From IMG/VR virus record IMGVR_UViG_3300047476_002078, positions 124,001-188,000 of that record: a stretch of DNA of 64,000 nt. One strand, given 5' to 3'. The notes beneath the pieces were generated by a model. It was not told the DNA's origin. It did not search any database and saw nothing but the letters and a program-made list of their open reading frames with translations. This document shows, in pieces, positions 10,063 to 58,962 of this stretch; position 1 is the first letter of the stretch, and every line of letters starts with the position of its first letter. The position numbers were made by a program, and so were the translations under genes.

Positions 10063-10372
10063 ACCTGAAAAAACAGGAGAACCTTCCCATGAAAGAAATA
10101 GACACCGCACTAAAAGCCTACATGAAAGAAAACAACGTGGATAAAAATGAACTTTTAGATGATATGGAAAATCAATCACACGGTTATAAATTAGCGATAG
10201 AAGCCTCTAACTATATCAAAATGTTCACAGGCACATCCTCTTTCTCCATGAAAGACTTGGAAACCCTACTAAAGAGATAAACACCAATACCCTAAAAGTA
10301 ACGCCGTGCGGTAGCAAAAATAAAACATATAGCGTATAACACCTATCTATCCTCAATAGAAAAGGAAACCAA

Positions 10373-14355: not shown

Positions 14356-14531
14356 CTCCCGAACAGATTCACGGAATCCGAAACTCCCGAACGGTTTCAC
14401 GGAATCCGAAACTCCCGAACGGTTTCACGGAATCCGAAACTCCCGAACGGTTTCACGGAATCCGAAACTTCACGGAATCCGAAACTCCCGAACGGTTTCA
14501 CGGAATCCGAAACTCCCGAACGGTTTCACGG
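14356..14531. repeat. tandem array of 28-bp unit CACGGAATCCGAAACTCCCGAACGGTTT
   Basis: Full units at 14370, 14398, 14426, 14471 and 14499; truncated 17-bp unit at 14454; partial flanks. Confidence 0.95.
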
Positions 14532-14652
14532 TTTACTTCGCCTCGACTTCGGAATCCTTCGACAGGCGGATATATACGGAAAGCGGATATATGGTTCGGA
14601 ATCCAATATTCATACGCATGTTATCGTTTGTAGCCTGTATAGGGTTTTAAAC

Positions 14653-14710
14653 GTGAATCTGTGTGGGTGTTTTTAGATATTCATACGCAGAGGTGAATCT
14701 GTGTGGGTGT
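14653..14710 (+). repeat. 18-bp direct repeat GTGAATCTGTGTGGGTGT x2
   Basis: Copies at 14653-14670 and 14693-14710. Confidence 0.85.
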
Positions 14711-14778
14711 ATATTGTAATGTGCTTTAAGGGCGGTAAAGTAAATTATAATTGCAACTACCAAGGATGCAATATCAAT

Positions 14779-14805
14779 TAAAAAAGCCTCCCTAAGCGGA
14801 GGCTT
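14779..14805 (-). terminator. intrinsic terminator for the minus-strand gene 14833..15231
   Basis: AAGCCTCC-ctaagc-GGAGGCTT hairpin flanked by an A-run (U-tract on the minus strand). Confidence 0.7.
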
Positions 14806-14831
14806 GTTGGCAATCCTGCCTTTGGTTATCT

Positions 14832-14847
14832 TCTATACCGATTCCAC
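14832..14847 (-). promoter_or_regulatory. 16-bp promoter-like element (15/16)
   Basis: GTGGAATCGGTATAG forms the last codons and stop (VESV*) of the minus-strand ORF. Confidence 0.55.
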
Positions 14848-15231
14848 TATTTTTTCGTATCTGTATTTTTGGCTTTCTTCATTCCATCCAACTTTAAACT
14901 CTACTTGTATCATTAAGTTTCCATTTTCTTCCCACAAATAATAGGAGTAGTGTGTTTGTTGGGCTTCCTCAGAAAAATCTGGAATAATACGAACTTCTGT
15001 CCATTTTCCAGAGTTTTCTGGAGCAAAAGATTTCTCCATAAGTTTTCCGACTATATAAGACCCTAAACAATCTGCATCTAAAGTCGGGCTTCCTTCCTTA
15101 AAGTCTTTGACAAGTGCTCTGAGTTCTTGCCCTAGAGATTTAGGGTGTCCATCACTACGGCGGTACACTGTAGTTAAAATCTCTTCTGTTTTTTTGTCAC
15201 GGTAAATAACAATTTTAGCATCTGTTGACAT
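14833..15231 (-). CDS. conserved-type phage hypothetical protein
   Basis: Start re-assigned to MSTDAKIV (RBS GAGG, downstream of the motif at 15286); YRRSDGHP resembles the common YxHxDGYP phage family. Confidence 0.7.
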   Translation of the reverse strand: MSTDAKIVIYRDKKTEEILTTVYRRSDGHPKSLGQELRALVKDFKEGSPTLDADCLGSYIVGKLMEKSFAPENSGKWTEVRIIPDFSEEAQQTHYSYYLWEENGNLMIQVEFKVGWNEESQKYRYEKIVESV

Positions 15232-15285
15232 ATATCTTCCTCTGTGTGATGGAGTAGTCAGTTCTCCATCTTTGTTTCTCGGAGG

Positions 15286-15301
15286 GCTATACCGATTCCA
15301 C
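15286..15301 (-). promoter_or_regulatory. 16-bp promoter-like element
   Basis: Exact copy on the minus strand. Confidence 0.75.
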
Positions 15302-15600
15302 CATAGTATTATTCCACCCTTGTACTCCATAGTTTCACCTTGGACTCCGTTTCGGATTCCAGTCTCACCTTGGACTCCAGTATTCTTGATTTTAGTAACA
15401 ATTTTTGTTTAGCGGAAATTCCTGATTAAAATCGTTGACATGATGCGTCCGAGAATAGTTCTTTTAGGTAGGGTTATCTAAGCATAAATAAAATCCAGTT
15501 ATCTGGAATTTCCGTATAACTGCTTTTTGTTTAGCTTCCCAACAGGGACAGTTTTTGTCTTTCTGTTGCTGCGGATGGTTGGGTTACTCCGGGCAAAATG

Positions 15601-15616
15601 GTGGAATCGGTATAGC
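15601..15616 (+). promoter_or_regulatory. 16-bp promoter-like element
   Basis: Exact copy; ATG at 15643. Confidence 0.8.
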
Positions 15617-15949
15617 ACTCGAAACGATAACGGGAGGAACCCATGTTAAAGACAATCAGAAGAGACAAGTTAAAAAGGGATATAGCGAAGGGCTTGTATG
15701 TTTGTAAGTGTAACTACCACTTTTCAGACGACGCTAGGTACGACTACATTTCGGATGAGAATACCGCCTATAAACAGATTAACCTCATTTCTGAGGGCAA
15801 TAAAAGGGACTACGACAAGATCAACTTGAGGGATGATGATTTCTCTAGTCAGGTTGGTAGGGCGTGGGAAAATGCGGATGGGAGCGTGACTTTGGTTATC
15901 CACTCGAATCTTTCTTATGACTTTAAAAAGGTATAAATAAAAATTGATT

Positions 15950-15977
15950 GCCTCCCGTTTTGGGAGGCTTTTTATTT
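15950..15977 (+). terminator. intrinsic terminator
   Basis: GCCTCCC-gtttt-GGGAGGC followed by TTTTTATTT. Confidence 0.85.
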
Positions 15978-15980
15978 GGG

Positions 15981-15996
15981 GTGGAATCGGTATAGC
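15981..15996 (+). promoter_or_regulatory. 16-bp promoter-like element
   Basis: Exact copy; no ORF before the next copy at 16084. Confidence 0.75.
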
Positions 15997-16083
15997 GGTT
16001 GAGTGCGAAAAGGGAACGCTGACCTGACTCTACCATGGTAGGGGGAGGTACATACAGGGAGGGGGGAGGAGAAATGGAATTGG

Positions 16084-16099
16084 GTGGAATCGGTATAGC
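16084..16099 (+). promoter_or_regulatory. 16-bp promoter-like element
   Basis: Exact copy; ATG at 16129. Confidence 0.8.
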
Positions 16100-16666
16100 A
16101 TCTGAAACCAACAACGGAGGAGATTCCAATGAAACTTACCCCTGCCCAAAAGAAACTTGAAAACTTCCTTAAAGAGAAGGGAGGAACTGTTTATGGTCCA
16201 GAAGTGAACAGGATGTTTGATAAGCGTGTGGTTGACTCAATGGTGTCTAAAGGTGTGGTAGAAAGCGTAGGTCGCTCTTACCTCAGACAGGACGATATGG
16301 AGATGGTTTACTACCACGAATACCGCCTTGTGGAAAAGACAGCGGAATTGAAGGCACGTAAAGAGGCTTTGTTGGCGGAACTTAAAAAGGTCGAAGAGGA
16401 ATTGGCAGCTTAATATAACGGAGGGGAGGCATGAAAGACTATAGAGTGTGGCTACGTTCCGTACCGAGCTTTTACGCTCAATATGATGGGTATGTGGATG
16501 TTTGGGCGGAGGATGAGGAGGAAGCGGTGGAGAAGGCTTTAAGAAAGATTCAGCGTGAATCCTTTCCTGATCGTGGTAGAGGGATGTGGAAAGTGGAGAA
16601 AGTAGAGCGGATGTGATACACATGCGTAGCACATGTGGCACACATCTTGCAGAAAAAAGAGTTAGA

Positions 16667-16682
16667 GTGGAATCGGTATAGC
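16667..16682 (+). promoter_or_regulatory. 16-bp promoter-like element
   Basis: Exact copy; no ORF before the next copy at 16758. Confidence 0.75.
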
Positions 16683-16757
16683 CTTCGAGACGGCGAAAGG
16701 GCAACGCAGATACCCGACTCTACCATGGTAGGGGGAGGAGCTACCGCTCGGAGTACG

Positions 16758-16773
16758 GTGGAATCGGTATAGC
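16758..16773 (+). promoter_or_regulatory. 16-bp promoter-like element
   Basis: Exact copy; ATG at 16799. Confidence 0.8.
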
Positions 16774-16798
16774 CTCTGAGAGAAAAACGGAGGTTGTC

Positions 16799-17182
16799 AT
16801 GAAAAAGAAAAGCAAACAATTAAAGAACAAAGATATGAATAATGAGGTGTATGCCTTACGTCGTAGGGTAATGAACTTCATTTATGAGGCTAGGGAGTTG
16901 GCGGAGATGCCGAGGGTTGAGGTAAGGATTACCGATAACCACGAAAGGATTTTGGGGCAGGCTCGGATGAGTGGGAACATCATTTGGATTACTGAAAGGG
17001 CTGTGACTTATTCCGACTTTGACTTGAGAACGATTGTGTTCCATGAGTTACTTCATGCGGTGTTTGGGGTGGAGCATGATGAGGGCTGTAAACTAATGAA
17101 GGCGATACATGAGCCTTTAACCAAATCGGAAGTACATAAACTGTTTAAGGGTTGGGTTAAGAAATCTAGTTTAGCTGCTTAG
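16799..17182 (+). CDS. SprT-like zinc metallopeptidase domain protein
   Basis: ILGQA...IWI...TIVFHELLHAVFG (HExxH) followed by H...C..M. Confidence 0.7.
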   Translation: MKKKSKQLKNKDMNNEVYALRRRVMNFIYEARELAEMPRVEVRITDNHERILGQARMSGNIIWITERAVTYSDFDLRTIVFHELLHAVFGVEHDEGCKLMKAIHEPLTKSEVHKLFKGWVKKSSLAA

Positions 17183-17198
17183 GTGGAATCGGTATAGC
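17183..17198 (+). promoter_or_regulatory. 16-bp promoter-like element
   Basis: Exact copy immediately after the TAG of 16799..17182. Confidence 0.8.
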
Positions 17199-17938
17199 CA
17201 GTGAAAGAAACTGGAGGGTTTATGAAATCTCAAAAAGACAAAGACTTTGTGGAATACGTGATGAGCTTCTATGGAGCAGGAGGATTGTATCAGGAATTTT
17301 TTGGTACAGGTGTTTCTGAATCGGAAGTTAAGAAGGCTTTGAGAATCCGTAAGAAGAACAAGAAGTTTGCGTTTGACGGAGATTCCATGGATAGGGAGAT
17401 TGTTCGAGATATTATGTTGTATCAGCGTGGCGACAGAAATCTTGAATGTAACATGAAACCTTACTTTGGGGCTTAATATGAATGACTTTGATTTTCATTA
17501 TCTATATATCAGTTCAAAAACTATCAAGCCGTTGAAAGACTTCGGCGTGGAGCGTGAGCGTATCCACGGTAGGGTAGAGTATCGGCGTGGTCAGTATCCT
17601 AAGAAATTCTATGAGACTTCCATCCATGGCACGGTATCGGAGTTGGAAGAGAAAATGTCGGAAGCTAGGAAGCATGGGCTTTTGGCGGTAATGAAATACC
17701 ACTGTGCGGATTAGGAAGGTTGTATGAAATTGGATGTAAATTTTGTTGGAAGGCGTAGTGGTGCTTTGGGAGTTACCTACGAGATTAGGGAGACTTTGGA
17801 AGTACCAGATAACATCACTTTTGAAGAGTTTCGTATGAAACTTTACGAAGTTGGTTATGAGTGTATCAATCTTGACGTGCGAGATGTTTACGTATCAGGA
17901 ACGAACGACCGTCATTTTTATGATAGGGCAAGAGCATA

Positions 17939-46563: not shown

Positions 46564-47223
46564 TCACTTAATGAACAAGGTTCTGTGGAGAGGGCAGGAA
46601 CCATATTTTTTTATGGCTTGCCTGTGATCTTCAGTACCGTAGCCTTTGTTTTTATCCCATCCGTACTGAGGATAAATACTCGATTGTTCAACAATTAAAC
46701 TATCTCTATAAACTTTTGCAACAGTTGAGGCACATCCTAAAAGATAGGATTTTGCATCACCTTTTATTATAGTTTCGTGCTCATAGATAGTATTTTGAAC
46801 TTTCCTGCTACCATCTAAAACAATCTTATATAAGTCTTGGTTTATTGAATCGTTGGATAATATTTTTGATAAGGCTGATTCAAATGCGAATTTATAAGAA
46901 CTTATCATTCCTTTTGAATTAATAAGTTCTGGCTCTGCTTCCCCAATAGATACTAAAAATCTATCGTTTTCTAATTCTTTGATACTATCAGAGACATTTT
47001 TTCTATTTTTCTCTGAAACTTTTTTACTATCATCTACTTTCTGTAAATTATTGTTTTTACTTATTATATCTGGGAGTTCCTCGTAAAAACTTCGATGGAT
47101 AGCTACACATCCTAGAACGATACTGCCTGCGAAAGAACCCCATCCTACTTCATCTATTCCTACTAACCAGTCTCCTAAAGAAAACAAAGTCTGATCGAAC
47201 TCTAGTTTTTCTTTCCACTTCAT
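46564..47223 (-). CDS. rnhB: ribonuclease HII
   Basis: GIDEVGWGSFAG, DSKK, IKGD, AS..AKVYRD, YGWDKNKGYGT..H, HR motifs. Confidence 0.93.
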   Translation of the reverse strand: MKWKEKLEFDQTLFSLGDWLVGIDEVGWGSFAGSIVLGCVAIHRSFYEELPDIISKNNNLQKVDDSKKVSEKNRKNVSDSIKELENDRFLVSIGEAEPELINSKGMISSYKFAFESALSKILSNDSINQDLYKIVLDGSRKVQNTIYEHETIIKGDAKSYLLGCASTVAKVYRDSLIVEQSSIYPQYGWDKNKGYGTEDHRQAIKKYGSCPLHRTLFIK

Positions 47224-49036: not shown

Positions 49037-49528
49037 ATGAACCAAAGGCTTGATTGCATCTGTGTACAAAAACTTACAAATTACAATTTTATGGAGAAAG
49101 AATTTATGATTGCTCATGAAACAAACGTGCTATTGAATAGCGTTATAAACACTGTACGTAATTTAGATAATAAAAAATCTCAGTTAGGAGATCAAAGCTC
49201 TCTTTTTATTAAAAACATTACGCAAAAATTAAAATCAAATGAGATTCCTCCTGTGGAATTAGTTTTTACTCACTATGTAGAAGAACTTGGATGCGACATT
49301 GATTTTTGGGTCAAATGGGATGGAAAAATATTCTTAACATCTTCTGATGGTAACGATGACTATTCTCCTATACTTGGACAAAAAATTCAAAGCCGATTTA
49401 ATTTTGTTAAGATGATTCCAGTAATATTAAAAGATATGGAAAATCATTTTTCAAACGAGTTGAAAGAAATGGATTTTTTTATAGAAGGTGCTGAAAGCGA
49501 AGATGAAGAAGATATAAACAGTCTTTAA
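49037..49528 (+). CDS. hypothetical protein (lone plus-strand gene)
   Basis: Start may be the downstream ATG near 49105 (GGAG); TAA overlaps the convergent TAA. Confidence 0.7.
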   Translation: MNQRLDCICVQKLTNYNFMEKEFMIAHETNVLLNSVINTVRNLDNKKSQLGDQSSLFIKNITQKLKSNEIPPVELVFTHYVEELGCDIDFWVKWDGKIFLTSSDGNDDYSPILGQKIQSRFNFVKMIPVILKDMENHFSNELKEMDFFIEGAESEDEEDINSL

Positions 49529-50229
49529 TTTAGAGAGGGGATAGAATCCCCTCTCCTTATTTCTTTAAGCCTATTTTTCGTCAAAGTGTGTTCCACATAT
49601 CCCAAATGGCAAAGTAAACTATACCTTTCTTTTTTAACTTTTAGTTCTTCGACTCTATGAAGTTTAGTAAAATCAAGATTATTTACAGTAACCATTACGC
49701 CGTGATTTGGTAAAATTTTATCAATCTCTTCCACTGTTTTTTCATCTATTCCACCGTATTTATTTAACTTAGCTTTCCCTATTCCTAAATACCCTCCGTC
49801 TGTTTCATAAAAAACGTCTTTAGTTAAATATAAAATATTTGTCATAAAAGTTGAATCGTAACTGTCGGAGTGCCATACCATACCTGAATTTTTTGCATAA
49901 TTATTTATCATTGGACTACCTTGAGAAAAGGGTCCGAAACAATCAGTAAACCATTTAAAATATTTTGAATTAGATAAGCCTTCCCAAAAATCTTTAAAAA
50001 TTTTTGGAGCTTCTTCATTATAGGATGTCAATGTGTGTGAAGCCTCCCACTTTGAAATTAAAGGAGCATCATATCCAGCGGAAGAATAGTAACCATCTCC
50101 TGTAACGTAAATTTGACTTCGTACTTGTTCTAAAAAATAATCAGCTACTTCGAGATCAATTCTTGTTACGGTGTAACCGTCTTTAAAGAATTTATGAATA
50201 TCAAAATTATCTTTTATTTGTAGTTTCAG
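49525..50229 (-). CDS. 2OG-Fe(II) oxygenase, paralog 2 (extended to a CTG start)
   Basis: WHSD (HxD), LHRV distal His, ERYSL; frame open upstream of TTG 50031 to 50244 and N-terminal extension aligns with paralog 1. Confidence 0.8.
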   Translation of the reverse strand: MKLQIKDNFDIHKFFKDGYTVTRIDLEVADYFLEQVRSQIYVTGDGYYSSAGYDAPLISKWEASHTLTSYNEEAPKIFKDFWEGLSNSKYFKWFTDCFGPFSQGSPMINNYAKNSGMVWHSDSYDSTFMTNILYLTKDVFYETDGGYLGIGKAKLNKYGGIDEKTVEEIDKILPNHGVMVTVNNLDFTKLHRVEELKVKKERYSLLCHLGYVEHTLTKNRLKEIRRGDSIPSLN

Positions 50230-50963
50230 ATCATGCTCCAGTTTTTAGCTTTCAATGAATAAAGAACATTTGCTGAATAACCAAACTGGCATATCAAAGA
50301 AAATCTTTTTTTATTTGTTTTTAACGGTGGTACACGATGAACAAAATTAGGGTTTAAATTATTAGCTGTGACCATTACACCATGATTAGGCAAAATTTTT
50401 CCAGTAGGTATAACTTTCTCTTTTTCAATTTCTCCCGTGTATTCACAAACCCCAAACTCAACGTAACCTCCATCGCTTTCTGTGAATGTTTCTTCTGTGA
50501 GATATATCATGTTGATTAAAAATGAAGCATCTCTAAAATCATAATGCCAGCTTAGACCATCATTTTTACTATATTTCATCATTTGTTTTGATAGCTGTGA
50601 AAAATCTCCGAAGTGTTGAGTTAGAGGTTTGAAATAATTCTCTTTAGATAAATTACTCCAGAAATCATTAAAATAAGGTTTATCATCTTCTACGAAACCC
50701 ATGCCCATTTGAGGTGAACTCAAATTTTCCCCTTCTGGAACAGTAAAAGGTGTTACACACTCACAATAAAAAAGTCCTGTGTCTGTGTGATAAACAGGAT
50801 GCTCGTCAGAACTTATAACTGAAGGATAATTGAATTTTTGATTACGTATTTTTTTAAGTAAATTGTCAGCTATATCTACATTAATTTTGGATACAGCGTA
50901 ACCTTTATTAAAGAAATCATTAAGATCAATAGAGTCATTGAGTATTATCTGATTCTTTGTCAT
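50226..50963 (-). CDS. 2OG-Fe(II) oxygenase, paralog 1
   Basis: WHYD (HxD), DGGYVEFG, FVHRV distal His, KRFSL 2OG-binding Arg. Confidence 0.85.
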   Translation of the reverse strand: MTKNQIILNDSIDLNDFFNKGYAVSKINVDIADNLLKKIRNQKFNYPSVISSDEHPVYHTDTGLFYCECVTPFTVPEGENLSSPQMGMGFVEDDKPYFNDFWSNLSKENYFKPLTQHFGDFSQLSKQMMKYSKNDGLSWHYDFRDASFLINMIYLTEETFTESDGGYVEFGVCEYTGEIEKEKVIPTGKILPNHGVMVTANNLNPNFVHRVPPLKTNKKRFSLICQFGYSANVLYSLKAKNWSMI

Positions 50964-51324
50964 GTATGCCTAAATGTATAATTAATTTTAAAATCATTTT
51001 GTTTTGTGATTCCATTCGATTGAGTAAAACTTTAATCTCGTCATTGGACATTTTGCTTACTTCATAATTGTACTTAGCCAATATCCTATCTTGTTCTCCT
51101 AGCTTCTTTTGAGACATTAGAATAAATGGGGCTGTATAAGCAGCTTGAAATGATAAAAATAAAGTTAAAAATAAAAATGGGTAAGGGTCTAATCTTAATA
51201 TTCCAAAATAGTTAAAAAACACCCAAGCAATAATGAATAGCGTTTGAAATATTACAAACTTCCAAGAGCCTACAAAATTGGTCACAAAATCAGCTAATTT
51301 AGACCATCTTTTTTTCCTATCCAT
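50935..51324 (-). CDS. DUF1003-family membrane protein
   Basis: FVGSWKF...W...DPYPFLFLTLFLSFQAAYTAPFILMSQ signature. Confidence 0.85.
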   Translation of the reverse strand: MDRKKRWSKLADFVTNFVGSWKFVIFQTLFIIAWVFFNYFGILRLDPYPFLFLTLFLSFQAAYTAPFILMSQKKLGEQDRILAKYNYEVSKMSNDEIKVLLNRMESQNKMILKLIIHLGIHDKESDNTQ

Positions 51325-51333
51325 TTTTTCCTT

Positions 51334-51810
51334 TTACAATATTGATAAAACTTCATTTAGTTCCTTACCTATAAACATTTCTTTTTTAAAGTAATCAACT
51401 GTTGACTTTACTTGCGATGGTAAAAAGTAAGAGTCATTAATTACGTTTACAAGTACAGGAAACACTCTTATTAAAACTTCATCATATAGAGATTTGCTAT
51501 CTTCAGAGTAAGGAACAAAATAAGGGTCATTTCCAAATAGCAATTCCGAGTCTGATAAGTTTTCATAATAATCAAGACCAAAGTATTTTGATATAAGGGA
51601 TGCGTAAACAATAGCTACCATAAAAGATTTTGCAGGATATTGAAGAAAAGTGACTTCTTCTTTGAAGTGCTTTTCAATATCTTCTACTATTTCTTGGAAT
51701 GTGTAGAAATCTTTGACTAGGTAAATTTCCTCTTTTGATATGTCATAAATTGAGTCTGTTATGGGCTGGGTTTGATGATAAACTTTCTGTCGTAATTTGT
51801 GTTCTTTCAT
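51334..51810 (-). CDS. hypothetical protein within the radical SAM cluster
   Basis: 158 aa, overlaps the end of rSAM-4. Confidence 0.7.
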   Translation of the reverse strand: MKEHKLRQKVYHQTQPITDSIYDISKEEIYLVKDFYTFQEIVEDIEKHFKEEVTFLQYPAKSFMVAIVYASLISKYFGLDYYENLSDSELLFGNDPYFVPYSEDSKSLYDEVLIRVFPVLVNVINDSYFLPSQVKSTVDYFKKEMFIGKELNEVLSIL

Positions 51811-52705
51811 ACCACTCCAATAAAAATTTAAACCCGTTGCAAGAATTTTCTAAACTTTTAACATCTCTATAATGTTCTGTTAGGCATGTTCCAAAATAAT
51901 CACATTTACTGCATATTTTGTTCTGTTTAACTTTTATTTTTTCATTTTCTCTCCATGTAAAATATTCTTCTATATTTTCCATTTCAACAAAATGTTCTCT
52001 ATCATCACTATCAAAATCTAAAATGCCAAATTTTCCTGAAGGTGTGATGTAAACGTGATTGTCAGAAAAAGCGTTTCGTTCTTTTTTTATACTCTCAACT
52101 ATGTTGAACTCATTAACGAATACAGACTTTAATTGTACTTTGTTATTCAAAAACTTTTTAATAAATTCTTCAAAGTCTTTAAAAGTAACATTTAAGCTAT
52201 TGTATTGATTTGTGCTATACGGCTTAATTTCTACAGACTTTACATTTGAGATACTGTTTAATGTTTGAATCATATAATCAACATCAATATTTATGAGGCA
52301 TGGAGAAGCCAACATCAATACAGCAATATGCTTGTTAAGAGAAAGCATATTGCTTAAAGTATTTTTAAACCCTGATCTACATTCAAAATCAAAGGATACT
52401 GAAACATCAACGTCTTCTCTCATTAACACATCTGTAATTTTGGTAAGATTAGTTATGATGTTTATTTTTCCGCCATAATACTTTTTAATTATTAAGAAAA
52501 GTTCATCCAAGTATTCTTTAGAAAGTAACTGTATTTCTCCTCCGTACAAGTCTATATGTTCTATTTTTTCATATTGTGAAATTTGTTTTAAACGCAAATC
52601 AATATCTTTTAGATCAGTTGTTTTTGGGTCACTTAATTTATCACCTAGATAACAAAAGGGGCATCTAAGATTGCAAAGATATGTCGGATTAAGAGACACA
52701 TTCAT
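51743..52705 (-). CDS. radical SAM enzyme 4 (partial SPASM/twitch-like C-terminus)
   Basis: CNLRCPFC, YGGE, C-terminal CSKCDYFGTC...SC. Confidence 0.9.
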   Translation of the reverse strand: MNVSLNPTYLCNLRCPFCYLGDKLSDPKTTDLKDIDLRLKQISQYEKIEHIDLYGGEIQLLSKEYLDELFLIIKKYYGGKINIITNLTKITDVLMREDVDVSVSFDFECRSGFKNTLSNMLSLNKHIAVLMLASPCLINIDVDYMIQTLNSISNVKSVEIKPYSTNQYNSLNVTFKDFEEFIKKFLNNKVQLKSVFVNEFNIVESIKKERNAFSDNHVYITPSGKFGILDFDSDDREHFVEMENIEEYFTWRENEKIKVKQNKICSKCDYFGTCLTEHYRDVKSLENSCNGFKFLLEWYERTQITTESLSSNPAHNRLNL

Positions 52706-53805
52706 GACTGTCCAATATCTTTAAAATATTCTTTAAAGTGCTCTTTAACATCGTCTTTAGCCGATGATAACTGTGATTCTAAGTCTTGTTTTACAGCCAC
52801 AAGTTTAAGAATATCATCTGCGTTACCTTTCATTATTTTACAATGTTCCTCTACCAAACCAAGCTTTTTGTAATCTTTAATAGTTTTGTGACAGCCATTG
52901 CAAATATCAAACATTGGACAAGTAAGACATTCATCTTTCATCCTTTGTAATTCATAATGTTGCTTCAAAGGGGTAAAGAAATTACCTTGTTTTACTTCTT
53001 GATCGAAATCAATTCTATACTTTCCTTCATCTTCAAAATCATCATCTCCAAAAGCTCCGCAAGAGTGATAAGCCCCATTAGGCTGAAGACATCGAATATG
53101 ACTGTCACACTCTCTTGCGAGAGGGCAAGTCGTTCCCATTTTTTTAATTCTGACAGTCATTTGTTTTGTGTTGTATTCCCAAGGAGCCAAACCTTCCTTA
53201 TATACATCAAGATATATTTTGTATATTTTTCCTAAAAGAAAAGGTTTTGATTGGTCGCCTGAAGCCATGGCATAGTTAAGCTTACACTCAACTCCCATTT
53301 TCTTAGCTAATCTCACATTATCTATTGCAGTATCTTCGTTTTCTTCTGTGATTACAGATATAAATCCGGGGCGGTATCCAACTTTTTCAAGAAATAAATC
53401 AGACACTTTCCAAAAAATATCCTCTGTGAAAACTTTGTTTTTTGTTATACGTCTAGTGTTTCCATAGTTAAAAGATGTGGCTACGCTTACCCTGTCTTGC
53501 CTTTTAAAAAGTTTTGTCCATTTATCAGGGTACTTATAAAAATCCCATAAATTTGTAGTGAAAGAAACTATAGCTGGATATTTGTTATCATCTAAATGTT
53601 TCACTAGCTCCCAATAATAATCAGGGTGGATTACAAGAGGGTCGCCTCCGTTCACAATAATTGTTCTGGTATCTGGAAATCTTTTTAAGAAATCCACAAT
53701 ATATTGCATTGGCAGTATTTGTTTTTTATCTTCTGAAATGTTGGTAGAGCTACAGAAAGTACAGGCAAAATTACAAACTTCTGTAGGTTTAATAATTAAG
53801 TCCAC
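52702..53805 (-). CDS. radical SAM/SPASM enzyme 3
   Basis: IKPTEVCNFACTFC, NGGDP, C..C..C-x-G-C region, CLTCPMFDICNGC. Confidence 0.93.
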   Translation of the reverse strand: MDLIIKPTEVCNFACTFCSSTNISEDKKQILPMQYIVDFLKRFPDTRTIIVNGGDPLVIHPDYYWELVKHLDDNKYPAIVSFTTNLWDFYKYPDKWTKLFKRQDRVSVATSFNYGNTRRITKNKVFTEDIFWKVSDLFLEKVGYRPGFISVITEENEDTAIDNVRLAKKMGVECKLNYAMASGDQSKPFLLGKIYKIYLDVYKEGLAPWEYNTKQMTVRIKKMGTTCPLARECDSHIRCLQPNGAYHSCGAFGDDDFEDEGKYRIDFDQEVKQGNFFTPLKQHYELQRMKDECLTCPMFDICNGCHKTIKDYKKLGLVEEHCKIMKGNADDILKLVAVKQDLESQLSSAKDDVKEHFKEYFKDIGQS

Positions 53806-54911
53806 TTTTTATCTATCTCCCTAAACATTATTTTATAAAGACATTCTGACAGTTGTTTTCTTTCTGCAAAATAAACATGATCTTCCATCACAAAACAAGA
53901 AAATCCACATCTTCCAAAAAACTCACAACTTAAACACTCTTTTTTTGTAACAAAAGATTCGATAATATTGGCATTACTTTCATAATTGATTTTATGTTCA
54001 AATTCGCTAGGGTTGTATTGGAGTTGTCTGCAAGTTAAAATTCTACCGTTAGGAAGAATCGTAATTTTGTTCAAACTCATACAGGTCATCTGGTTTACAT
54101 CATTTTCAATCCACTGTTTTATTGGCTGAATTTCTGGAAATTCATTAATAACTTTAAGCAAGAAATCCAAAATGTCTTTGTCTGAAGGTACTAGCAATTG
54201 AGCGTTAGTTTCAGGGGTGTAATAATCGAAACTTATAGGAAAACCTTCATCATACAAGTATTTAAAGTAACTTGTATCAGAATTTAAAAACTTTTCGATA
54301 GTAGGTTTGGTCAAAACTAAATTAATAGTTCCTATATGCTTTTTAAATTTTATTATGTTTTTATGCCATAAGGTATTAACGTGATGAGCTACTGCTCGAC
54401 CATGAAAATCAAGAGAGGTTGTAATGCAAAATTCTATATTATTATTTTCTAATTTATTTAAAAACTCTTCAACTTTTTCTACTTCAGTAAAAAGACAATT
54501 TGTAACTAAAACAATATTGGCTTGTTTATTTAGTGTTTTAGCATGTGAATCAACTTTTTTTATCAATTCAAAATAGTCATCAAATTTGTTTCTTCCATCT
54601 TGAAAAATTTCTCCGCCCATTAGACAGATATTAAAACGAGTGCAAGAATTATCACTGATAAATTGATTGATAGGTTCAGCTTTTTCAATAATTTCTTCAA
54701 GACCTGTGGTATCATCGTGATCTTGCCAGCAAAAAGCACAACGTAAATTGCAAGCTTGAAAAAGACTTACTTCTACTTCTGCTTCAGAAGGAACTTTAGT
54801 TCGTAATAAAGACTTTATGTAATTTTCATCAACAGGACTTTGAAGTTTTGATTCCTTAAACTCTTGATAAGTTTTAGGTCCTTCTGTCACTATTGGAATT
54901 TTTTTCTTCAT
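53796..54911 (-). CDS. radical SAM/SPASM enzyme 2
   Basis: CNLRCAFC, MGGE, CMS...PNGRILTC, CLSCEFFGRCGFSC...C. Confidence 0.92.
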   Translation of the reverse strand: MKKKIPIVTEGPKTYQEFKESKLQSPVDENYIKSLLRTKVPSEAEVEVSLFQACNLRCAFCWQDHDDTTGLEEIIEKAEPINQFISDNSCTRFNICLMGGEIFQDGRNKFDDYFELIKKVDSHAKTLNKQANIVLVTNCLFTEVEKVEEFLNKLENNNIEFCITTSLDFHGRAVAHHVNTLWHKNIIKFKKHIGTINLVLTKPTIEKFLNSDTSYFKYLYDEGFPISFDYYTPETNAQLLVPSDKDILDFLLKVINEFPEIQPIKQWIENDVNQMTCMSLNKITILPNGRILTCRQLQYNPSEFEHKINYESNANIIESFVTKKECLSCEFFGRCGFSCFVMEDHVYFAERKQLSECLYKIMFREIDKKWT

Positions 54912-55086
54912 CTAAATATTTTCCCCACTTACCAATGGGACATTCGCTATTTTTAAGTCTGGCTTTTACAACCATGAAACAGCCACACTTTCCGCAAACA
55001 TCCATCTTTAACGGTTGCTTTAATTCTGGACAAGCTCTACAAATACCTATTCGATATTCGTAATTTTCTTCATCAACAAAAATCAA
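54874..55086 (-). CDS. small Cys-rich protein (DUF6171-like, tentative)
   Basis: RIGICRACP...CGKCGCFMVVKARLKNSECPIGKW. Confidence 0.75.
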   Translation of the reverse strand: MIFVDEENYEYRIGICRACPELKQPLKMDVCGKCGCFMVVKARLKNSECPIGKWGKYLDEEKNSNSDRRT

Positions 55087-55868
55087 ACAATACCTTCGGA
55101 TACCACAGCTTCATCAATTTTTTGTTCAATTAACGAAAGCTCTTGGCTCACTTTAGCAATCATATCAGGAGTAATATCCCCATTTGCTAAAGCGTCTATA
55201 CCTAAACATAAAGGGTTTTTTGAATTTAAAATATAATGAGTGAGCATTAATCCTTTAAAAGCCCCTTCCTCAAACTGCATCTTGAACCATTTCAAAGGGT
55301 GTTTACTAGGCTTACTTACAAACGCCTCAATGAATCCTTCAATTTGGATTACATTCAGTACATTAACTGTGATATACATAGCATCATTTACTTCTTCAAA
55401 TTCATCCAATGATATTTGAGGGTCGAAGGCTCGGACATACAAAAGCAAAATAGAATCTAAAAAAGTTGCCCACTTCTCCACCACTTCAGGATATTTGGCA
55501 ATAAATTCAGGTATTTCTTCATTGGATAAAACACTCTTTTCGATGACACTAATATGATCTACCTCTTTATAAAAAAGCATTATGTGTGCAATTGTTTGTG
55601 AAAGAGGTATAGATGCGTTGAAAGCTCTTAGTTTCATAAAAGCTGCTATAAAATCGTGTTTTTCAACTGTCGATGTTTCTGATAAATCAAAATCTGGATT
55701 TAACTCTAGGTTTGCTAGATATGTTAAAAGCTGATCTCCTTTTATTGAACTATTTGCATAATCCACAGTGTATTTAATTTTTTCTCTATTCATGAAAACT
55801 TCTTTCATGAGATCAACACTTAAAGGAATTGTTACACGTCTTTCAATAAATTCTACATTTGTTTCCAT
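55083..55868 (-). CDS. hypothetical protein within the radical SAM cluster
   Basis: Start re-assigned to METNVEF (ATG 55868); its AGGAG RBS lies in the last codons of the precursor gene. Confidence 0.8.
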   Translation of the reverse strand: METNVEFIERRVTIPLSVDLMKEVFMNREKIKYTVDYANSSIKGDQLLTYLANLELNPDFDLSETSTVEKHDFIAAFMKLRAFNASIPLSQTIAHIMLFYKEVDHISVIEKSVLSNEEIPEFIAKYPEVVEKWATFLDSILLLYVRAFDPQISLDEFEEVNDAMYITVNVLNVIQIEGFIEAFVSKPSKHPLKWFKMQFEEGAFKGLMLTHYILNSKNPLCLGIDALANGDITPDMIAKVSQELSLIEQKIDEAVVSEGIV

Positions 55869-55869
55869 T

Positions 55870-56427
55870 TTATCTCCTAGCTCTACTGCTATGGCATGAA
55901 CTGTGGCATGAACTGTGGCATGAGCTATGACATGAACAGTGACACCCATCTTGTGTTATACAAGCGACTCTGTAAGCCGCACCTTCTGAAAGGTCAGCGA
56001 TATTCTTTAAAGTAGTAACAAAGTTATTCAAAGCTGTAGCTGATACTACCCCTTGAGGTCCGGGCGTTGTATCTATTTGAGAAGTTAAAGCGGAAACATA
56101 GTAAGCACTTGTTAAAGCAGCAACACGGATACCATTATATACTGAGTAGTTTCCACACGAAGGATTGTATCTTCCCGACTCTAGCTGTCTGATTCTAGTT
56201 GATTCTTTGGCAAAATTTCTAATTTGCGTAATTACTTCATTAGCCGTTAAAACCGAACTCAGATTACTTTCGCCCATGGGAGTTAATTGTGTGTCCAAAG
56301 TACCACAATTAGGTTCGATGGAAGAATCTGTCCACCAAACAACTCTACTATTTTTGGGTGTAACTATATCATTATTAACATCGTTGATTATACCTGCTTT
56401 GGTAATAATCGTTCCTTGAATAGCCAT
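55870..56427 (-). CDS. candidate RiPP-like precursor/substrate with C-terminal CHxS repeats
   Basis: 185 aa ending GCHCSCHSSCHSSCHSSCHSSRARR; directly downstream of rSAM-1. Confidence 0.75.
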   Translation of the reverse strand: MAIQGTIITKAGIINDVNNDIVTPKNSRVVWWTDSSIEPNCGTLDTQLTPMGESNLSSVLTANEVITQIRNFAKESTRIRQLESGRYNPSCGNYSVYNGIRVAALTSAYYVSALTSQIDTTPGPQGVVSATALNNFVTTLKNIADLSEGAAYRVACITQDGCHCSCHSSCHSSCHSSCHSSRARR

Positions 56428-56436
56428 TAAAAACTC

Positions 56437-57522
56437 CTACTCTTGCCCGATGAAACCGTTTAAAACAGTTCTCATAAGGGTTGCATCTCCATAAGGAAAT
56501 TCTTTATTATATTTAAGCTTTTGCATTAAAGTTTTAGGAGCAGGGCAAACATCTCCATCCCAAGCTAGTTGGTGACAATCCCCATTACAAATATCGAAAA
56601 CATCGCATCCATAACAGCCCGGATTTCTAACTGCTTCACAAGCAATTTCCTTCATTCTTCCTTTTGAATACATGATTTCCAGAATTGGATAGTCTATGTA
56701 TCCATAAGGTTTTTCGACCGCAGAATTTGGACACCCTCCAACAGTTCCGTCAGCATTGAGTGTGAATATTTTTTGCTCACATGTTCTGCACCGACATCCG
56801 CTGTGGGTACTGTGAACTAAAGGTGAGAGGATAGAATTGAAAAATAAATTTTGAATTTTTTCATGATATTTATTCTCTATCGTCTGTTCCCACATCTTTA
56901 GAAAATAGTCTTGTAAATTTTTGTTTCCTGCGGCTAGATCATTATTACTTCTAGCGTTACCATTTGGAGTCATTCTTTCAAAATTAAGATAAGTGACTCC
57001 TAAATCAATCATTTTTTCTATGATTTGTTTTGGCTCTAATTCAAGAGTTTTAGAAGTAAGTGAAACCATAACTGTAACAGGGTATCCAAGCTTAACAAGA
57101 GTTCGGACATTATTCTCCCACAGTTCTTCAGCCTTTCTATTCGGAAATCTGATTTTATAATCCCATGAAGTTCCAAAGCTGTTTCTTTTTAACACCTCAT
57201 CGAAAAAAGCAATTTTAGCATCATCCAGTCTGTAGGTTAGGTTGGTTTGAATACCCCACCAAACCTCATCCCAAAGAGGGCTTACCTCTCTGTAAACTTT
57301 TAGCATATCTTCAATAGGAGCAAGCATAGGCTCTCCTCCGTGAAAGGATATGTGTCCACCTTTTTTAAAATTAGGAACGACTTCTTTTAATCTCTTGAAA
57401 AAACTAATAGTTTTATCTGGATTAAAAAATACTTTTTTGCCTTGAGAGCCGCTGGTGAAGCAATGCTCACAGTTTAACTGACATGTTTCTGTTGTTTTTA
57501 AATATACCATCAACTCATTCAT
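56437..57522 (-). CDS. radical SAM/SPASM enzyme 1
   Basis: LKTTETCQLNCEHC, FHGGEP, QTNL, CRCRTC...DGTVGGCPN, CYGCDVFDICNGDC...C. Confidence 0.95.
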   Translation of the reverse strand: MNELMVYLKTTETCQLNCEHCFTSGSQGKKVFFNPDKTISFFKRLKEVVPNFKKGGHISFHGGEPMLAPIEDMLKVYREVSPLWDEVWWGIQTNLTYRLDDAKIAFFDEVLKRNSFGTSWDYKIRFPNRKAEELWENNVRTLVKLGYPVTVMVSLTSKTLELEPKQIIEKMIDLGVTYLNFERMTPNGNARSNNDLAAGNKNLQDYFLKMWEQTIENKYHEKIQNLFFNSILSPLVHSTHSGCRCRTCEQKIFTLNADGTVGGCPNSAVEKPYGYIDYPILEIMYSKGRMKEIACEAVRNPGCYGCDVFDICNGDCHQLAWDGDVCPAPKTLMQKLKYNKEFPYGDATLMRTVLNGFIGQE

Positions 57523-57557: not shown

Positions 57558-58109
57558 TTACAAGTCAACTGCGTTTTCTGGTTTTTCCGATTTTTTACAA
57601 CTGTCACTACAAAATTTTGCGTACTTACCTTTTATAGTAAAATAACTTCCACAGGATTGGCAATTTTTTAACAAGTCTGTACCGTAATATTTGCAGAACA
57701 AGCTAAAGTTGTACAAGATAATTCCAGTTATCCAGTCTCCGTTAGCATCTCCAATTTTTACGAAACGCTGTATATTACCTTTTTTATCTTCTTCTTTAAT
57801 CTCTCTTAAAGAAGATAAATAGAAATTAGCCCATTGCCCAAAATCCTTATCGAATTTTTTAAAGTTCATGATGTGATCTATATGATCTTTGAACTTTTTT
57901 TGAACAAGTCTAAAAGCTTCTAAATGATGTTCTTTGAAACTTTCTTTTCGTTCATTAACGGACACTTTGTCAGACTCATCGTTAAAAACAGAACCTAACT
58001 TCTCTAAGAGATTTGTAACATACTCTTCTGATATTTTAGAATTTAAAAATTTAACGAACAAAGGTTCTTCTTTTGGAAGAATACTTTTAGATTTCTTTTT
58101 TTCAGCCAA
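57558..58109 (-). CDS. protein with C-terminal treble-clef (CGNR-like) zinc finger
   Basis: CQSCGSYF...AKFCSDSCK; track start is TTG, so the true start is uncertain. Confidence 0.6.
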   Translation of the reverse strand: MAEKKKSKSILPKEEPLFVKFLNSKISEEYVTNLLEKLGSVFNDESDKVSVNERKESFKEHHLEAFRLVQKKFKDHIDHIMNFKKFDKDFGQWANFYLSSLREIKEEDKKGNIQRFVKIGDANGDWITGIILYNFSLFCKYYGTDLLKNCQSCGSYFTIKGKYAKFCSDSCKKSEKPENAVDL

Positions 58110-58113
58110 TTTT

Positions 58114-58962
58114 TCATCCCTTGTTTTGCAATACCGAGACTATTTTTTCGCAAATATCGTCAGGGAGTCTTGGTATTTCTATTTTTATCTTTATTATATG
58201 ATCTCCGTAACTATTTTTTCTGTTATCAAATAACCCCTTGCCTTTTAACCGTAACATCTGTTCAGGTTGTACGCATCTAGGTATTTGAACTTCTATTTTG
58301 CCGTGCAAAGTATCAGCCGTAATAGTGCTATTGTCAAAGACTTTAATGAAAGGCAAATTTACTGTTGAATATACGGTTGTTCCATTTATTTCAAAAATGC
58401 TATGAGGAGCGACTTGAATATTAACGATTACATCTTTTTCTTCTGCGATTAATGTTGTTCCTGAAGTAACGCTACGTGGTATAGAAACACTTGTTTGTTT
58501 GTGTGTGCTCGTTGAACCTACTCCGAAACATCTATCACAACTAGAGATAGCTCGACCTGTTTTATCGAAAGTTGTAGCTCCTGTTCCTCCACAATAATGA
58601 CAAGTTTCATTGATTTTATATTGAATAGTTTTGGTAACACCTTGAAATGCTTCTTCTAAAGTAAGAACAATACTAATATGTACTGTTTTCTTTCTGACGC
58701 TTCCCTGCATATTTGTAAAGAAGTCTTTAAAGTAAGTTTCAAGGTCGGAATCCCAAACAAAACTACCATGTGATCTGTTTTTATAAGACTTAACTTTTTG
58801 TTCAGTGTTTATGAGTTCGTAAGCTGATTGTATCTCACGAAATTTATCCTCATCTCCACCGCTTTTGTCTGGGTGATATTTTAGAGCTAAGGTTCGATAA
58901 GCTTTTTTAATTTCTTGCTGTGTAGCATTTTCAGAAACGCCGAGGATTTCAAACGGGTTCAT
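58114..58962 (-). CDS. dnaJ: DnaJ-class co-chaperone
   Basis: J domain with HPD, CxxCxGxG repeats (CHYCGGTG, CDRCFGVG), C-terminal LRLKGKGL. Confidence 0.93.
   Translation of the reverse strand: MNPFEILGVSENATQQEIKKAYRTLALKYHPDKSGGDEDKFREIQSAYELINTEQKVKSYKNRSHGSFVWDSDLETYFKDFFTNMQGSVRKKTVHISIVLTLEEAFQGVTKTIQYKINETCHYCGGTGATTFDKTGRAISSCDRCFGVGSTSTHKQTSVSIPRSVTSGTTLIAEEKDVIVNIQVAPHSIFEINGTTVYSTVNLPFIKVFDNSTITADTLHGKIEVQIPRCVQPEQMLRLKGKGLFDNRKNSYGDHIIKIKIEIPRLPDDICEKIVSVLQNKG

Follow-up and report, generated by a model that had tools for sequence, protein, structure and literature searches.

The locus raises the question of whether a giant phage uses a set of radical SAM enzymes to modify one of its own proteins. 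It lies in a window of 64,000 nucleotides, the whole stretch of DNA analysed here, from the IMG/VR record IMGVR_UViG_3300047476_002078. An earlier note, based on the sequence alone, had described a RiPP-like modification cluster with four radical SAM enzymes (rSAM-1 to rSAM-4), two 2OG-Fe(II) oxygenases and a substrate with five CHxS repeats. Our analysis confirms the observation and supports the interpretation in its main lines, with the refinements detailed below.

All eleven ORFs of the run exist on the minus strand. They overlap or abut by 4-68 nt, the only larger gap being 194 nt before oxygenase-2, and a hairpin with a 10-bp stem closes the run. One mechanically called ORF of 288 aa begins with the repeat read in another frame, while the 261-aa start chosen in the earlier note matches the homologues. 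The features are listed in the table.

Table. Features of the radical SAM locus and its surroundings, in positions of the window
Coordinates	Strand	Feature	Length	Profile match, motif or conserved residues
49525-57522	-	Run of eleven co-oriented genes
57558..58962	-	Upstream neighbours: Cys-rich protein and J-domain (DnaJ-like) protein	183 aa (Cys-rich protein)	DnaJ and DnaJ_C domains (J-domain protein)
56437..57522	-	rSAM-1, radical SAM/SPASM enzyme	361 aa	PF04055; C14/18/21 plus 8 C-terminal Cys, arranged CX10GX4C...CX2CX5CX3C...C, invariant in 23 orthologues
55870..56427	-	Tail protein, proposed substrate	185 aa	No Pfam or PHROG family
55873..55944	-	Conserved C-terminal motif of the tail protein		(C-H-x-S)5-R-A-R-R, reading CHCS-CHSS-CHSS-CHSS-CHSS-RARR-stop
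55892-55941		Tandem array found by TRF	12-bp period	4.2 copies
55083..55868	-	p261, conserved partner of unknown fold	261 aa	phrog_20767, E 1.3e-37
55083-55949		Mechanical ORF	288 aa
54874..55086	-	DUF6171 Cys-rich protein	70 aa	PF19668, E 1.7e-7
53796..54911	-	rSAM-2, radical SAM with the canonical 7-Cys SPASM set	371 aa	PF04055; C54/58/61 plus C277, 294, 326, 329, 335, 339 and 357 invariant in 37 orthologues
52702..53805	-	rSAM-3, radical SAM/SPASM-like enzyme	367 aa	PF04055, 40.1 bits; C11/15/18 plus 8 Cys invariant
51743..52705	-	rSAM-4, radical SAM with partial SPASM (twitch-like) set	320 aa	PF04055, 41 bits; C11/15/18 plus only 4 Cys; C265, 268, 274 and 289 invariant in 28 orthologues
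51334..51810	-	p158, conserved helical partner of unknown function	158 aa	phrog_20737, E 3.2e-26; 14 invariant residues
50935..51324	-	DUF1003 membrane protein		PF06210, E 7.5e-28
50226..50963	-	Oxygenase-1, P4H-like 2OG-Fe(II) oxygenase	245 aa	PF13640/PF13661, 24 bits, just below the cut-off; HYD...H and RxS-type motif
49525..50031	-	Oxygenase-2, P4H-like 2OG-Fe(II) oxygenase, last gene of the run	168 aa	PF13661/PF13640, 27.2 bits, at the cut-off; HxD...H and RxS-type motif
49533-49555		Hairpin following oxygenase-2	10-bp stem

The four enzymes all carry invariant CX3CX2C motifs. In Pfam searches rSAM-3 and rSAM-4 score above the gathering cut-off, while rSAM-1 and rSAM-2 fall 1-3 bits below it, and in NCBIfam rSAM-1, -2 and -3 give weak SPASM hits (TIGR04085). 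The cysteines conserved across orthologues amount to full SPASM sets in rSAM-1, -2 and -3 and to a four-Cys set in rSAM-4. In rSAM-1 the CX3CX2C motif starts at residue 14, so that there is no room for an N-terminal RRE. The best NCBIfam matches are peptide- and protein-modifying SPASM enzymes, not nucleotide or cofactor enzymes, and include CbpB, anSME, DarE/DynA, PapB and TIGR04083. In the PDB the best matches are anSME 4k37 (E 6.6e-10 for the rSAM-1 profile) and CteB 5wgg. All scores are far below the family cut-offs, so these are new subfamilies.

The tail protein is composed of a predicted alpha/beta N-terminal domain (residues ~10-156) and a disordered C-terminal tail carrying the repeats. 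The AF2 model has a pLDDT of 76 and a pTM of 0.71, with low confidence in the tail, and its only fold matches are uncharacterised phage homologues, including gp170 of Agrobacterium phage Atu_ph07. The family has at least 850 clusters at 50% identity. Of the best 145 representatives, 130 end exactly in (CHxx)3-RxRR, 129 of them with three repeats, and in most phages the motif is (C-H-x-S)3-R-[GS]-R-R. The canonical substrate has three repeats and not the five described in the earlier note, which are a local expansion; close relatives have 3, 5 or 6 repeats. In the 130 representatives, which share at most 50% identity, Cys, His, the fourth-position Ser and the three Arg are invariant or nearly so, while the rest of the protein averages about 20% column identity. 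Synonymous codons are scrambled across 60 distinct tails, with Ser using both AGY and TCN and Arg using both AGR and CGN.

The association of this tail with the enzymes is far beyond chance. The core, composed of rSAM-1 to rSAM-4, the tail protein, p261 and p158, recurs in Atu_ph07, Sinorhizobium phage Phosso, Ralstonia RSL2/RSF1-like phages, Pseudomonas phage pPa_SNUABM_DT01 and many IMG/VR contigs. The tail gene lies directly beside the rSAM-1 orthologue in all five cultured-phage loci opened (Atu_ph07, Phosso, RSF1, RSL2 and DT01), which cover three lineages. Of 50 IMG/VR loci found through the motif, 45 carry rSAM orthologues and the other five are truncated. Among loci retrieved through rSAM-3 alone, 30 of the 33 with full flanks carry a tail gene (27 canonical, 3 variant), and the other three appear to have a second, split layout which puts the tail genes more than 10 kb away; for two of these the tail genes were found on the same contig.

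Within the core, rSAM-1 has one-to-one orthologues at 33-50% identity in Atu_ph07, Phosso, RSF1 and DT01. The most conserved gene is rSAM-3, with 50-73% identity across lineages and more than 1500 clusters at 90% identity. Orthologues of rSAM-2 and rSAM-4 occur in both layouts, and p158 is the only non-rSAM partner shared by both. The gene for p261 is adjacent to the tail gene in every group-1 locus that extends far enough; the protein has no Pfam or PDB match, even with a profile. The AF2 model of p158 (pLDDT 86) has no PDB fold or sequence match, and hence no RRE-like fold.

The other members of the run are less constant. The DUF6171 and DUF1003 proteins were found in no other locus, the former being absent also from L006, the closest relative, and both are lineage-specific and not part of the conserved system. 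The two oxygenases belong to the same family, and homologues of oxygenase-1 lie inside the cluster in 10-11 loci, including RSF1 ORF083/084. Oxygenases are always present in this layout, but their family varies, the P4H-like pair being one of three interchangeable types. The cupin placed upstream of rSAM-1 in most loci matches PF08007, probably the ribosomal-oxygenase type that hydroxylates His or Arg in proteins. The two upstream neighbours appear to be conserved next to the cluster only in L006, which has the only homologue of the 183-aa protein and the same gene order, with a 286-aa ORF in the DnaJ position, so that any link to the system is uncertain.

This is not a RiPP system in the strict sense, as no RRE and no protease were detected in the Pfam, NCBIfam, PHROG and PDB comparisons and the product appears to stay a protein. 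Atu_ph07 gp170, with a computed mass of 31,894 Da matching the listed 31.89 kDa, gave 8 peptides and 35% coverage in the virion proteome and peaked in gel band 1, the top band, whereas other ~30-kDa proteins peak in bands 7-8. The enzymes were not found there, and gp165, 168, 169, 171 and 172 are not listed (PMC6102473 Suppl. Table S5). This virion association rests on one phage and on a PEG-purified preparation which also held non-structural proteins such as RNR, a RecA-like protein and terminase, and since the loading buffer as described contains no reductant, the high-mass behaviour of gp170 could be disulfide or metal-mediated. In the second layout two short tail-protein paralogues sit directly after a virion structural protein and two collagen-like tail-fibre genes. 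On the other hand, in the window the cluster lies among replication genes and not structural ones, and in RSF1 the homologue is annotated only as hypothetical.

Among known systems, the comparison made in the earlier note with HxsA/B/C is apt, that system having since been characterised as the HXS anti-phage defence (HxsA-D) of Pseudomonadota (PMC13128918). There, several radical SAM enzymes plus a small helper mature a full-length protein with tandem His-x-Ser triplets rich in basic residues, and the mapped modification (+8 Da) sits on the last repeat, SHRSS, and needs its His and Ser; the phage tail likewise ends in S-C-H-x-S-R-x-R-R. The phage enzymes are however not HxsB or HxsC (30 and 27 bits against cut-offs of 370 and 268), there is no HxsD hit, and the tail protein has no peptidoglycan-binding domain or signal sequence. 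Each triplet is preceded by an invariant Cys, there are four to eight rSAMs instead of two, oxygenases are present, and the system is encoded by the virus, with the Atu_ph07 homologue found in virion preparations and not in the periplasm. The anaerobic sulfatase-maturing enzyme (anSME, PDB 4k36-4k39) shares with rSAM-1 a CX3CX2C motif near the N-terminus, the absence of an RRE and a fully ligated SPASM domain with 8 Cys. It acts on a Cys or Ser of a folded protein in a C-x-x-x-R context, and the last phage repeat reads C-H-x-S-R. The score is 52.6 bits against a family cut-off of 349, the substrate is not a sulfatase and lacks the Pro/Ala of the C/S-x-P/A-x-R motif, and formylglycine formation here is only a conjecture.

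The SPASM thioether maturases of ranthipeptides and sactipeptides (CteB, PapB) and the CrpC/CrpA pair of methanogens (PMC13692751) are also encoded beside a Cys-rich repeat substrate, and CrpC shows, through ranthionine crosslinks on CrpA, that such enzymes can crosslink a large protein. CrpC and CteB have an RRE domain, which is missing here; scores are 35-38 bits against a cut-off of 340, the substrate motif is new, several paralogous enzymes act together and the host is a virus. Three-residue cyclophane synthases (HaaB and HtkB, PMC11499958; FxsB, GrrM/OscB, YhhB) act on tandem aromatic-x-x triplets, including His-first motifs, which H-x-S fits formally, and weak hits to YhhB, GrrM, FxsB and AmcB models were found. 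These scores are 15-33 bits against cut-offs of 310-445, the products of those systems are short released peptides, and no evidence here bears on the bond type. The pathways for PQQ (PqqA/PqqE/PqqD with later oxygenase steps) and mycofactocin (MftA/B/C) share an invariant C-terminal core, a SPASM enzyme as the first step and later oxygen-dependent tailoring, but no PqqD/MftB-type RRE protein and no peptidase were found in the phage system, where the core is repeated and attached to a conserved folded domain.

An alternative is that the tail is the precursor of a released product, be it a secreted RiPP, a metal chelator or a peptide-derived redox cofactor, with the N-terminal domain as a long leader or carrier and each CHxS unit yielding one copy. 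An invariant core beside a variable remainder is what PqqA and MftA show, a SPASM enzyme combined with oxygenases is the PQQ logic, the repeat number varies (3, 5, 6 and up to about 12) as in multi-core precursors, and many enzymes act on few residues. We consider this unlikely, since no protease, RRE/PqqD-like protein or exporter is conserved in the cluster, the N-terminal domain is a conserved fold, peptides of the Atu_ph07 protein were recovered from virion preparations, and the tail genes sit in a tail-fibre module in the second layout. It is similarly doubtful that the tail is only a metal or Fe-S binding element, such as a cluster carrier, an electron donor or a Zn clasp for enzymes whose true substrate would be something else, for example tail fibres, nucleic acid or a cofactor. 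Cys-His pairs are classical metal ligands, rSAM enzymes with three clusters have a high Fe-S demand, a J-domain protein lies upstream in this lineage and rSAM-3 has weak MoaA-type similarity. However, metal binding does not require the Ser at position 4 and the three Arg, which are as invariant as Cys and His, and variants lose a Cys but keep H-x-S. SPASM enzymes next to a Cys-rich repeat are in every characterised case its modifiers (PMC13692751; PMC13128918), and no alternative conserved substrate gene is present in group-1 loci. An accidental juxtaposition, with the tail as a product of DNA slippage, could be invoked from the 12-bp array and its variable copy number in close relatives, but is effectively refuted by the scrambled codons, the exact C-terminal position of the motif and its synteny with the enzymes in all lineages.

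The explanation we favour, with moderate confidence (no biochemical evidence exists for any modification), is a phage-encoded protein-maturation system whose inferred substrate is the disordered tail of the 185-aa protein. The four paralogous enzymes, three with two auxiliary Fe-S clusters of the SPASM type and one with a four-Cys auxiliary site, would act on this tail, and as each keeps a one-to-one orthologue in other phages each may carry out its own step. The most likely steps are hydrogen abstraction followed by intramolecular crosslinking, by Cys thioethers and/or His-to-Ser carbon-carbon links on the H-x-S triplets, although oxidation of Cys or Ser to an aldehyde is also possible. The 261-aa and 158-aa proteins probably present the tail to the enzymes or help them, and the Fe(II)/2OG oxygenases would add hydroxylations. 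Some aspects fit less easily, as four to eight enzymes for a 16-residue tail is more than simple crosslinking needs, and how oxygen-sensitive rSAM enzymes and oxygen-requiring 2OG oxygenases both work in aerobic hosts is unexplained. No paper we found interprets the cluster. With its last 16 residues almost unchanged in hundreds of unrelated phages, the tail appears to mark a widespread and unstudied viral system that modifies one of the phage's own proteins. The modified tail is inferred to stay attached to its folded N-terminal domain, and the protein is probably built into or onto the virion, where the crosslinked, basic, metal-binding tail would act as a stable clasp or contact element.

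The contig to which the window belongs, IMG/VR UViG_3300047476_002078, is 355,874 bp long, of jumbo-phage size, and has no close relative among cultured phages. Eleven genes which overlap or abut are found in the order rSAM-1, the 185-aa tail protein, a 261-aa protein (p261, phrog_20767), a 70-aa DUF6171 protein, rSAM-2, rSAM-3, rSAM-4, a 158-aa protein (p158, phrog_20737), a DUF1003 membrane protein and two P4H-like 2OG-Fe(II) oxygenases. The run ends at a 10-bp-stem hairpin opposite a convergent gene; apart from this terminal hairpin, the promoter and terminator scan was no better than shuffles. One of the mechanically listed ORFs, of 288 aa, begins with a 27-residue stretch (VHVIAHATVHATVHA...) which is simply the CHxS repeat read in another frame. 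Directly upstream of the cluster are found a full J-domain protein (DnaJ plus DnaJ_C) and a 183-aa Cys-rich protein, and the nearest relative of the window (locus L006) has the same order, with a confirmed homologue of the 183-aa protein and a 286-aa ORF in the DnaJ position; the two might act as a chaperone for the enzymes or the substrate. Elsewhere in the window, a 219-aa protein with a GIDEVGWG...DSKK pattern looks like RNase HII, although it was matched only by an unannotated PHROG (phrog_19422). The first 43 kb hold almost only small plus-strand ORFs of less than 150 aa. No code variant lengthened these ORFs coherently, giving no sign of stop-codon reassignment, and no tRNAs were found; GC is 0.36-0.445 between 14 and 42 kb, against about 0.31 from 44 kb onward.

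Coordinates of the features discussed in the text, in the window and in comparison loci.
Sequence	Position	Strand	Feature
Window	49525-57522	-	Eleven-gene run
Window	55083-55949	-	Mechanically listed 288-aa ORF
Window	55869-55949	-	27-residue stretch, CHxS repeat in another frame
Window	55868	-	Real start of the 261-aa protein
Window	57558-58962	-	J-domain protein and 183-aa Cys-rich protein
Window	46564-47223	-	219-aa protein
Window	1-43000		Region of small plus-strand ORFs
L002 (Ralstonia phage RSF1)	8560-10338		Interrupted part of the cluster, accessory genes
L034, and the same region of L032 and L017 (second layout)	10346-17783		Five extra CX3CX2C proteins
L057 (archaeon MAG contig CAZGDN010000013.1)	3300-17000		Cellular multi-rSAM cluster
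L057 (archaeon MAG contig CAZGDN010000013.1)	7265-8728		487-aa repeat protein
L064/L065	~5.9 kb into the locus		Variant tail
L134	~8.1 kb into the locus		Variant tail

All four rSAM proteins fall in one PHROG family (phrog_1802), but they are old paralogues, each having its own one-to-one orthologue in other phages at 30-58% identity and only about 20-25% identity to its neighbours. The CX3CX2C motif that binds the SAM-cleaving [4Fe-4S] cluster is present in all four and is conserved in 22-37 orthologues each, with the exception of one rSAM-4 orthologue which lacks it. Scores against the radical SAM family PF04055 are 40.1 and 41 bits for rSAM-3 and rSAM-4, above the 29.5 cut-off, and 26.5 and 28.8 bits for rSAM-1 and rSAM-2, just below it. 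With respect to the SPASM motif (TIGR04085; CX9-15GX4C - gap - CX2CX5CX3C - gap - C), rSAM-1 has CX10GX4C...CX2CX5CX3C...C plus an eighth Cys, rSAM-2 has the exact seven cysteines and rSAM-3 is a variant with CX2CX5CX2C and eight Cys, all of them invariant, even if the HMM scores are only 20-21 bits against a cut-off of 27. rSAM-4 does not carry this motif and keeps four Cys only. In both oxygenases the iron triad (H-Y-D and H-S-D, with a distal H in ...HRV) and the basic residue that binds 2OG (R in KRFSL/ERYSL) are visible in the sequence, while Pfam scores for PF13640/PF13661 are 24.3 bits (below) and 27.2 bits (at) against a cut-off of 27.

The rSAM proteins match peptide- and protein-modifying SPASM families best, but always far below the family cut-offs. 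The profile of rSAM-1 hits the anaerobic sulfatase-maturing enzyme anSME first and the thioether synthase CteB second in the PDB, where a single-sequence search had given nothing. The score against the anSME family (TIGR03942) is nevertheless 52.6 bits against a cut-off of 349.45, there is no sulfatase gene in the cluster, and the last repeat of the tail reads C-H-x-S-R, without the conserved Pro or Ala of the C/S-x-P/A-x-R motif. For the ranthipeptide/sactipeptide maturases (PapB NF047865, CteB-like) scores are 37.7 and 34.7 bits against a cut-off of 340, and the proposed substrate is a protein of 130-320 aa in place of a short SCIFF-type or sactipeptide precursor. For the three-residue cyclophane synthases (TIGR04261, TIGR04269, NF041707, NF041718) scores are 14-33 bits against cut-offs of 310-445. 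PADLOC gave only generic viperin-type rSAM similarity. Nucleotide or cofactor chemistry (MoaA-, QueE- or viperin-like) was considered for the enzymes and rejected, because those matches are weaker, cover only the N-terminal cluster-binding part and ignore the SPASM domain.

The cluster does not satisfy the strict definition of a RiPP biosynthetic cluster as far as leader recognition is concerned. In rSAM-1, rSAM-3 and rSAM-4 the CX3CX2C motif begins at residue 11-14, which is the anSME-like build and leaves no room for an RRE domain, and rSAM-2 has only 53 residues before the motif. There are no PqqD-like hits. The p158 model is a confident helical one with no RRE-like fold and no match in the PDB by Foldseek, and profile searches of p158 and p261 against PDB and Pfam gave nothing. 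No protease family was detected in the cluster.

The 185-aa protein ends in CHCS-CHSS-CHSS-CHSS-CHSS-RARR. Its N-terminal part gives a confident alpha/beta model (pLDDT 76, pTM 0.71), followed by a disordered tail; this model matches nothing in the PDB and only uncharacterised phage proteins in BFVD. A tblastn search with this protein against cultured phages found nothing, the likely causes being the low-complexity filter and divergence, since homologues were then found by synteny. Homologues placed next to the rSAM-1 orthologue end in the same way: Atu_ph07 gp170 ends ...CHSSCHASCHNSRSRR, Phosso ends ...CHTSCHASCHSSRSRR, RSF1 ORF071 ends ...CHSSCHSSCHGSRGRR and DT01 PA10_00065 ends ...CHTSCHTSCHSARGRR. 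A profile search of 1.84 billion representative proteins finds 850 clusters (50% identity) at E <= 1e-3. Among the best 145, 130 end exactly in (CHxx)3-RxRR and 129 of those have three repeats, most exceptions being one-residue variants or looking like truncated sequences. Outside the tail the family averages about 20% column identity. Across 60 distinct tails the codons are fully mixed (TGC/TGT 85:96, CAC/CAT 84:96, Ser from both codon boxes and Arg from both boxes), and selection therefore acts on the peptide and not on a DNA repeat.

The five repeats of the window are a clade-specific expansion through a 12-bp array. Its relatives carry 3, 5 or 6 repeats and a few phages have long multi-module tails. 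Rare variant tails exist (loci L064/L065 and L134; proteins P0268, P0285 and P0309), including CHSS-CHSS-HSS-RNRR, which has lost the third Cys but kept H-x-S, and one with four CHxS repeats ending in GDGPGNGGGV instead of RxRR. Outside phage contigs, the 487-aa protein of the archaeon MAG contig L057 has an N-terminal membrane anchor and carries a run of HSS triplets followed by about twelve CHxS repeats; it is surrounded by at least seven CX3CX2C radical SAM genes and a class-V aminotransferase/cysteine-desulfurase-like gene, a cellular multi-rSAM cluster built on the same repeat theme. A 4.3-kb contig of the cultured gut Firmicute Dysosmobacter segnis BX15 (L062) contains a fragment of the system composed of a multi-module tail, p261 and rSAM-2, which suggests a phage or prophage carrying it in an anaerobe. 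Three actinomycete hits (L056, L059, L060) are internal CHTS runs in GC-rich ORFs with no cluster homologue besides the repeat match itself and were set aside as unrelated.

The fifty IMG/VR loci retrieved through the motif fall into two layouts. The first has a tail protein of 170-320 aa with rSAM-1 to rSAM-4, p261 and p158; the window, all the cultured phages and 26 loci in total belong here. The second, found only on uncultured contigs, has two tandem tail proteins of 126-140 aa directly after a virion structural protein and two collagen-like tail-fibre genes, followed by five more CX3CX2C proteins (phrog_31457-like, with no SPASM motif detected) and, on the other strand, rSAM-2, p158, rSAM-4 and rSAM-3, which gives eight rSAM-like genes for two 16-residue tails. 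For an unbiased test we fetched 80 loci through rSAM-3 alone. Of the 33 with at least 9 kb on both sides, 27 have a canonical tail ORF upstream on the same strand, 3 have variant tails and 3 appear to be loci of the second layout, whose tail genes lie beyond the fetched flank, as is known for two of them from the same contigs.

Every locus of the first layout also has at least one Fe(II)/2OG-type oxygenase in the run, but the family varies: a PF08007 JmjC-type cupin just upstream of rSAM-1 in about 22 loci, PF13759-type enzymes in 15 loci and the P4H-like pair in 10-11 loci. The window and its nearest relative L006 have only the P4H-like pair. DUF6171 and DUF1003 occur nowhere else. The accessory content of the cluster varies between lineages, since in RSF1 it is interrupted by an HNH endonuclease gene and two dihydrofolate-reductase genes and holds a fifth rSAM (ORF074), while DT01 has seven CX3CX2C proteins.

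In the virion proteome of Atu_ph07 (PMC6102473, Suppl. Table S5), gp170 is listed at 31.89 kDa, which equals the 31,894 Da computed for this tail protein, with 8 unique peptides and 35% coverage. It was present in gel bands 1-9 and was most abundant in band 1, which also holds a 127-kDa protein, whereas the many ~30-kDa virion proteins peak in bands 7-8. The three annotated rSAM enzymes (gp165, gp168, gp171), gp169 and the cupin gp172 are not listed. In this one proteome, obtained from a PEG-purified preparation which also contained replication proteins and with a loading buffer that as described has no reductant, these data suggest a virion-associated protein in an SDS-resistant high-mass form. 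Beyond the gp170 row, nothing about the cluster is found in the main text or Table S5 of that paper, nor in the AP-J-162 paper, and the radical SAM gene of cyanophage S-SCSM2R is unrelated.

The nearest characterised system is the bacterial HXS defence (PMC13128918), in which two rSAMs and a small partner mature the full-length HxsA protein, the mapped change being +8 Da on its last His-x-Ser repeat, SHRSS. Mature HxsA then binds DNA in the periplasm and blocks phage genome entry. The phage proteins are not members of those families: rSAM-1 scores 30.2 bits against HxsB (TIGR03978, cut-off 370), rSAM-3 scores 27 bits against HxsC (TIGR03977, cut-off 267.9) and no protein hits HxsD (TIGR03976). 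The tail protein has H-x-S triplets, each preceded by Cys, but no Pfam domain of any kind, no TIGR03979 hit and, by eye, no evident N-terminal signal-like hydrophobic stretch, while the HXS effector has a peptidoglycan-binding domain and N-terminal processing for export. The HXS paper does not mention phage homologues. A second precedent for SPASM enzymes acting on a large Cys-rich protein is CrpC/CrpA (PMC13692751).

The link between the enzymes and the tail is as strong as comparative genomics can make it. That the tail is the substrate is inferred, and the chemistry, which is open, may include thioethers from the three Cys, His-to-Ser links on the H-x-S triplets, oxidation to aldehydes that could then crosslink to other proteins, and hydroxylation of His or Arg, and the number of dedicated enzymes, from four to eight, suggests that most residues of the tail are touched. 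On the evidence of the predicted fold, the proteome and the tail-fibre neighbourhood we favour a product that stays on the protein and serves in the particle. In this window, however, the cluster lies among primase, exonuclease and clamp genes, so the structural role is the weakest link. A cofactor released from the tail and a metal-carrier role of the tail remain possible, but at low probability. It is also possible, although unlikely on present evidence, that the system is the viral counterpart of the bacterial HXS defence; it could escort or shield the incoming genome, neutralise or mimic the periplasmic HxsA of the host, or exclude superinfecting phages. If so, the phage and the host would use the same rare protein chemistry on opposite sides of genome delivery, and the modification, involving Cys, His and Ser and made by four to eight rSAMs, would also be a new polycyclic crosslink type.

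Radical SAM maturation of peptides and of a few proteins is known in cells, but no viral pathway of this kind was found characterised in the literature searched, where papers on the cultured phages that carry it only list "radical SAM genes". All database names are generic, i.e. "hypothetical protein" or "radical SAM protein with 4Fe4S-binding SPASM domain". What differs from known rSAM-dependent protein maturation are the enzyme subfamilies, a new and extremely conserved motif in the proposed substrate, and the viral setting. The system is common, with at least 850 clusters at 50% identity for the tail-protein family and more than 1500 clusters at 90% identity for rSAM-3, and occurs in soil, plant-pathogen, Pseudomonas, marine-type and gut phage sequences. 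The motif is one of the most rigidly conserved short sequences one could find in proteins that are otherwise about 20% identical, which implies an exact chemical product. If the product is a crosslinked virion component, it would be an enzyme-installed way of hardening or arming a virus particle, different from self-catalysed capsid chainmail, and if it works at DNA entry, it would link directly to the newly described HXS defence. In either case it offers four or more new SPASM enzyme subfamilies with a defined, easily expressed proposed substrate.
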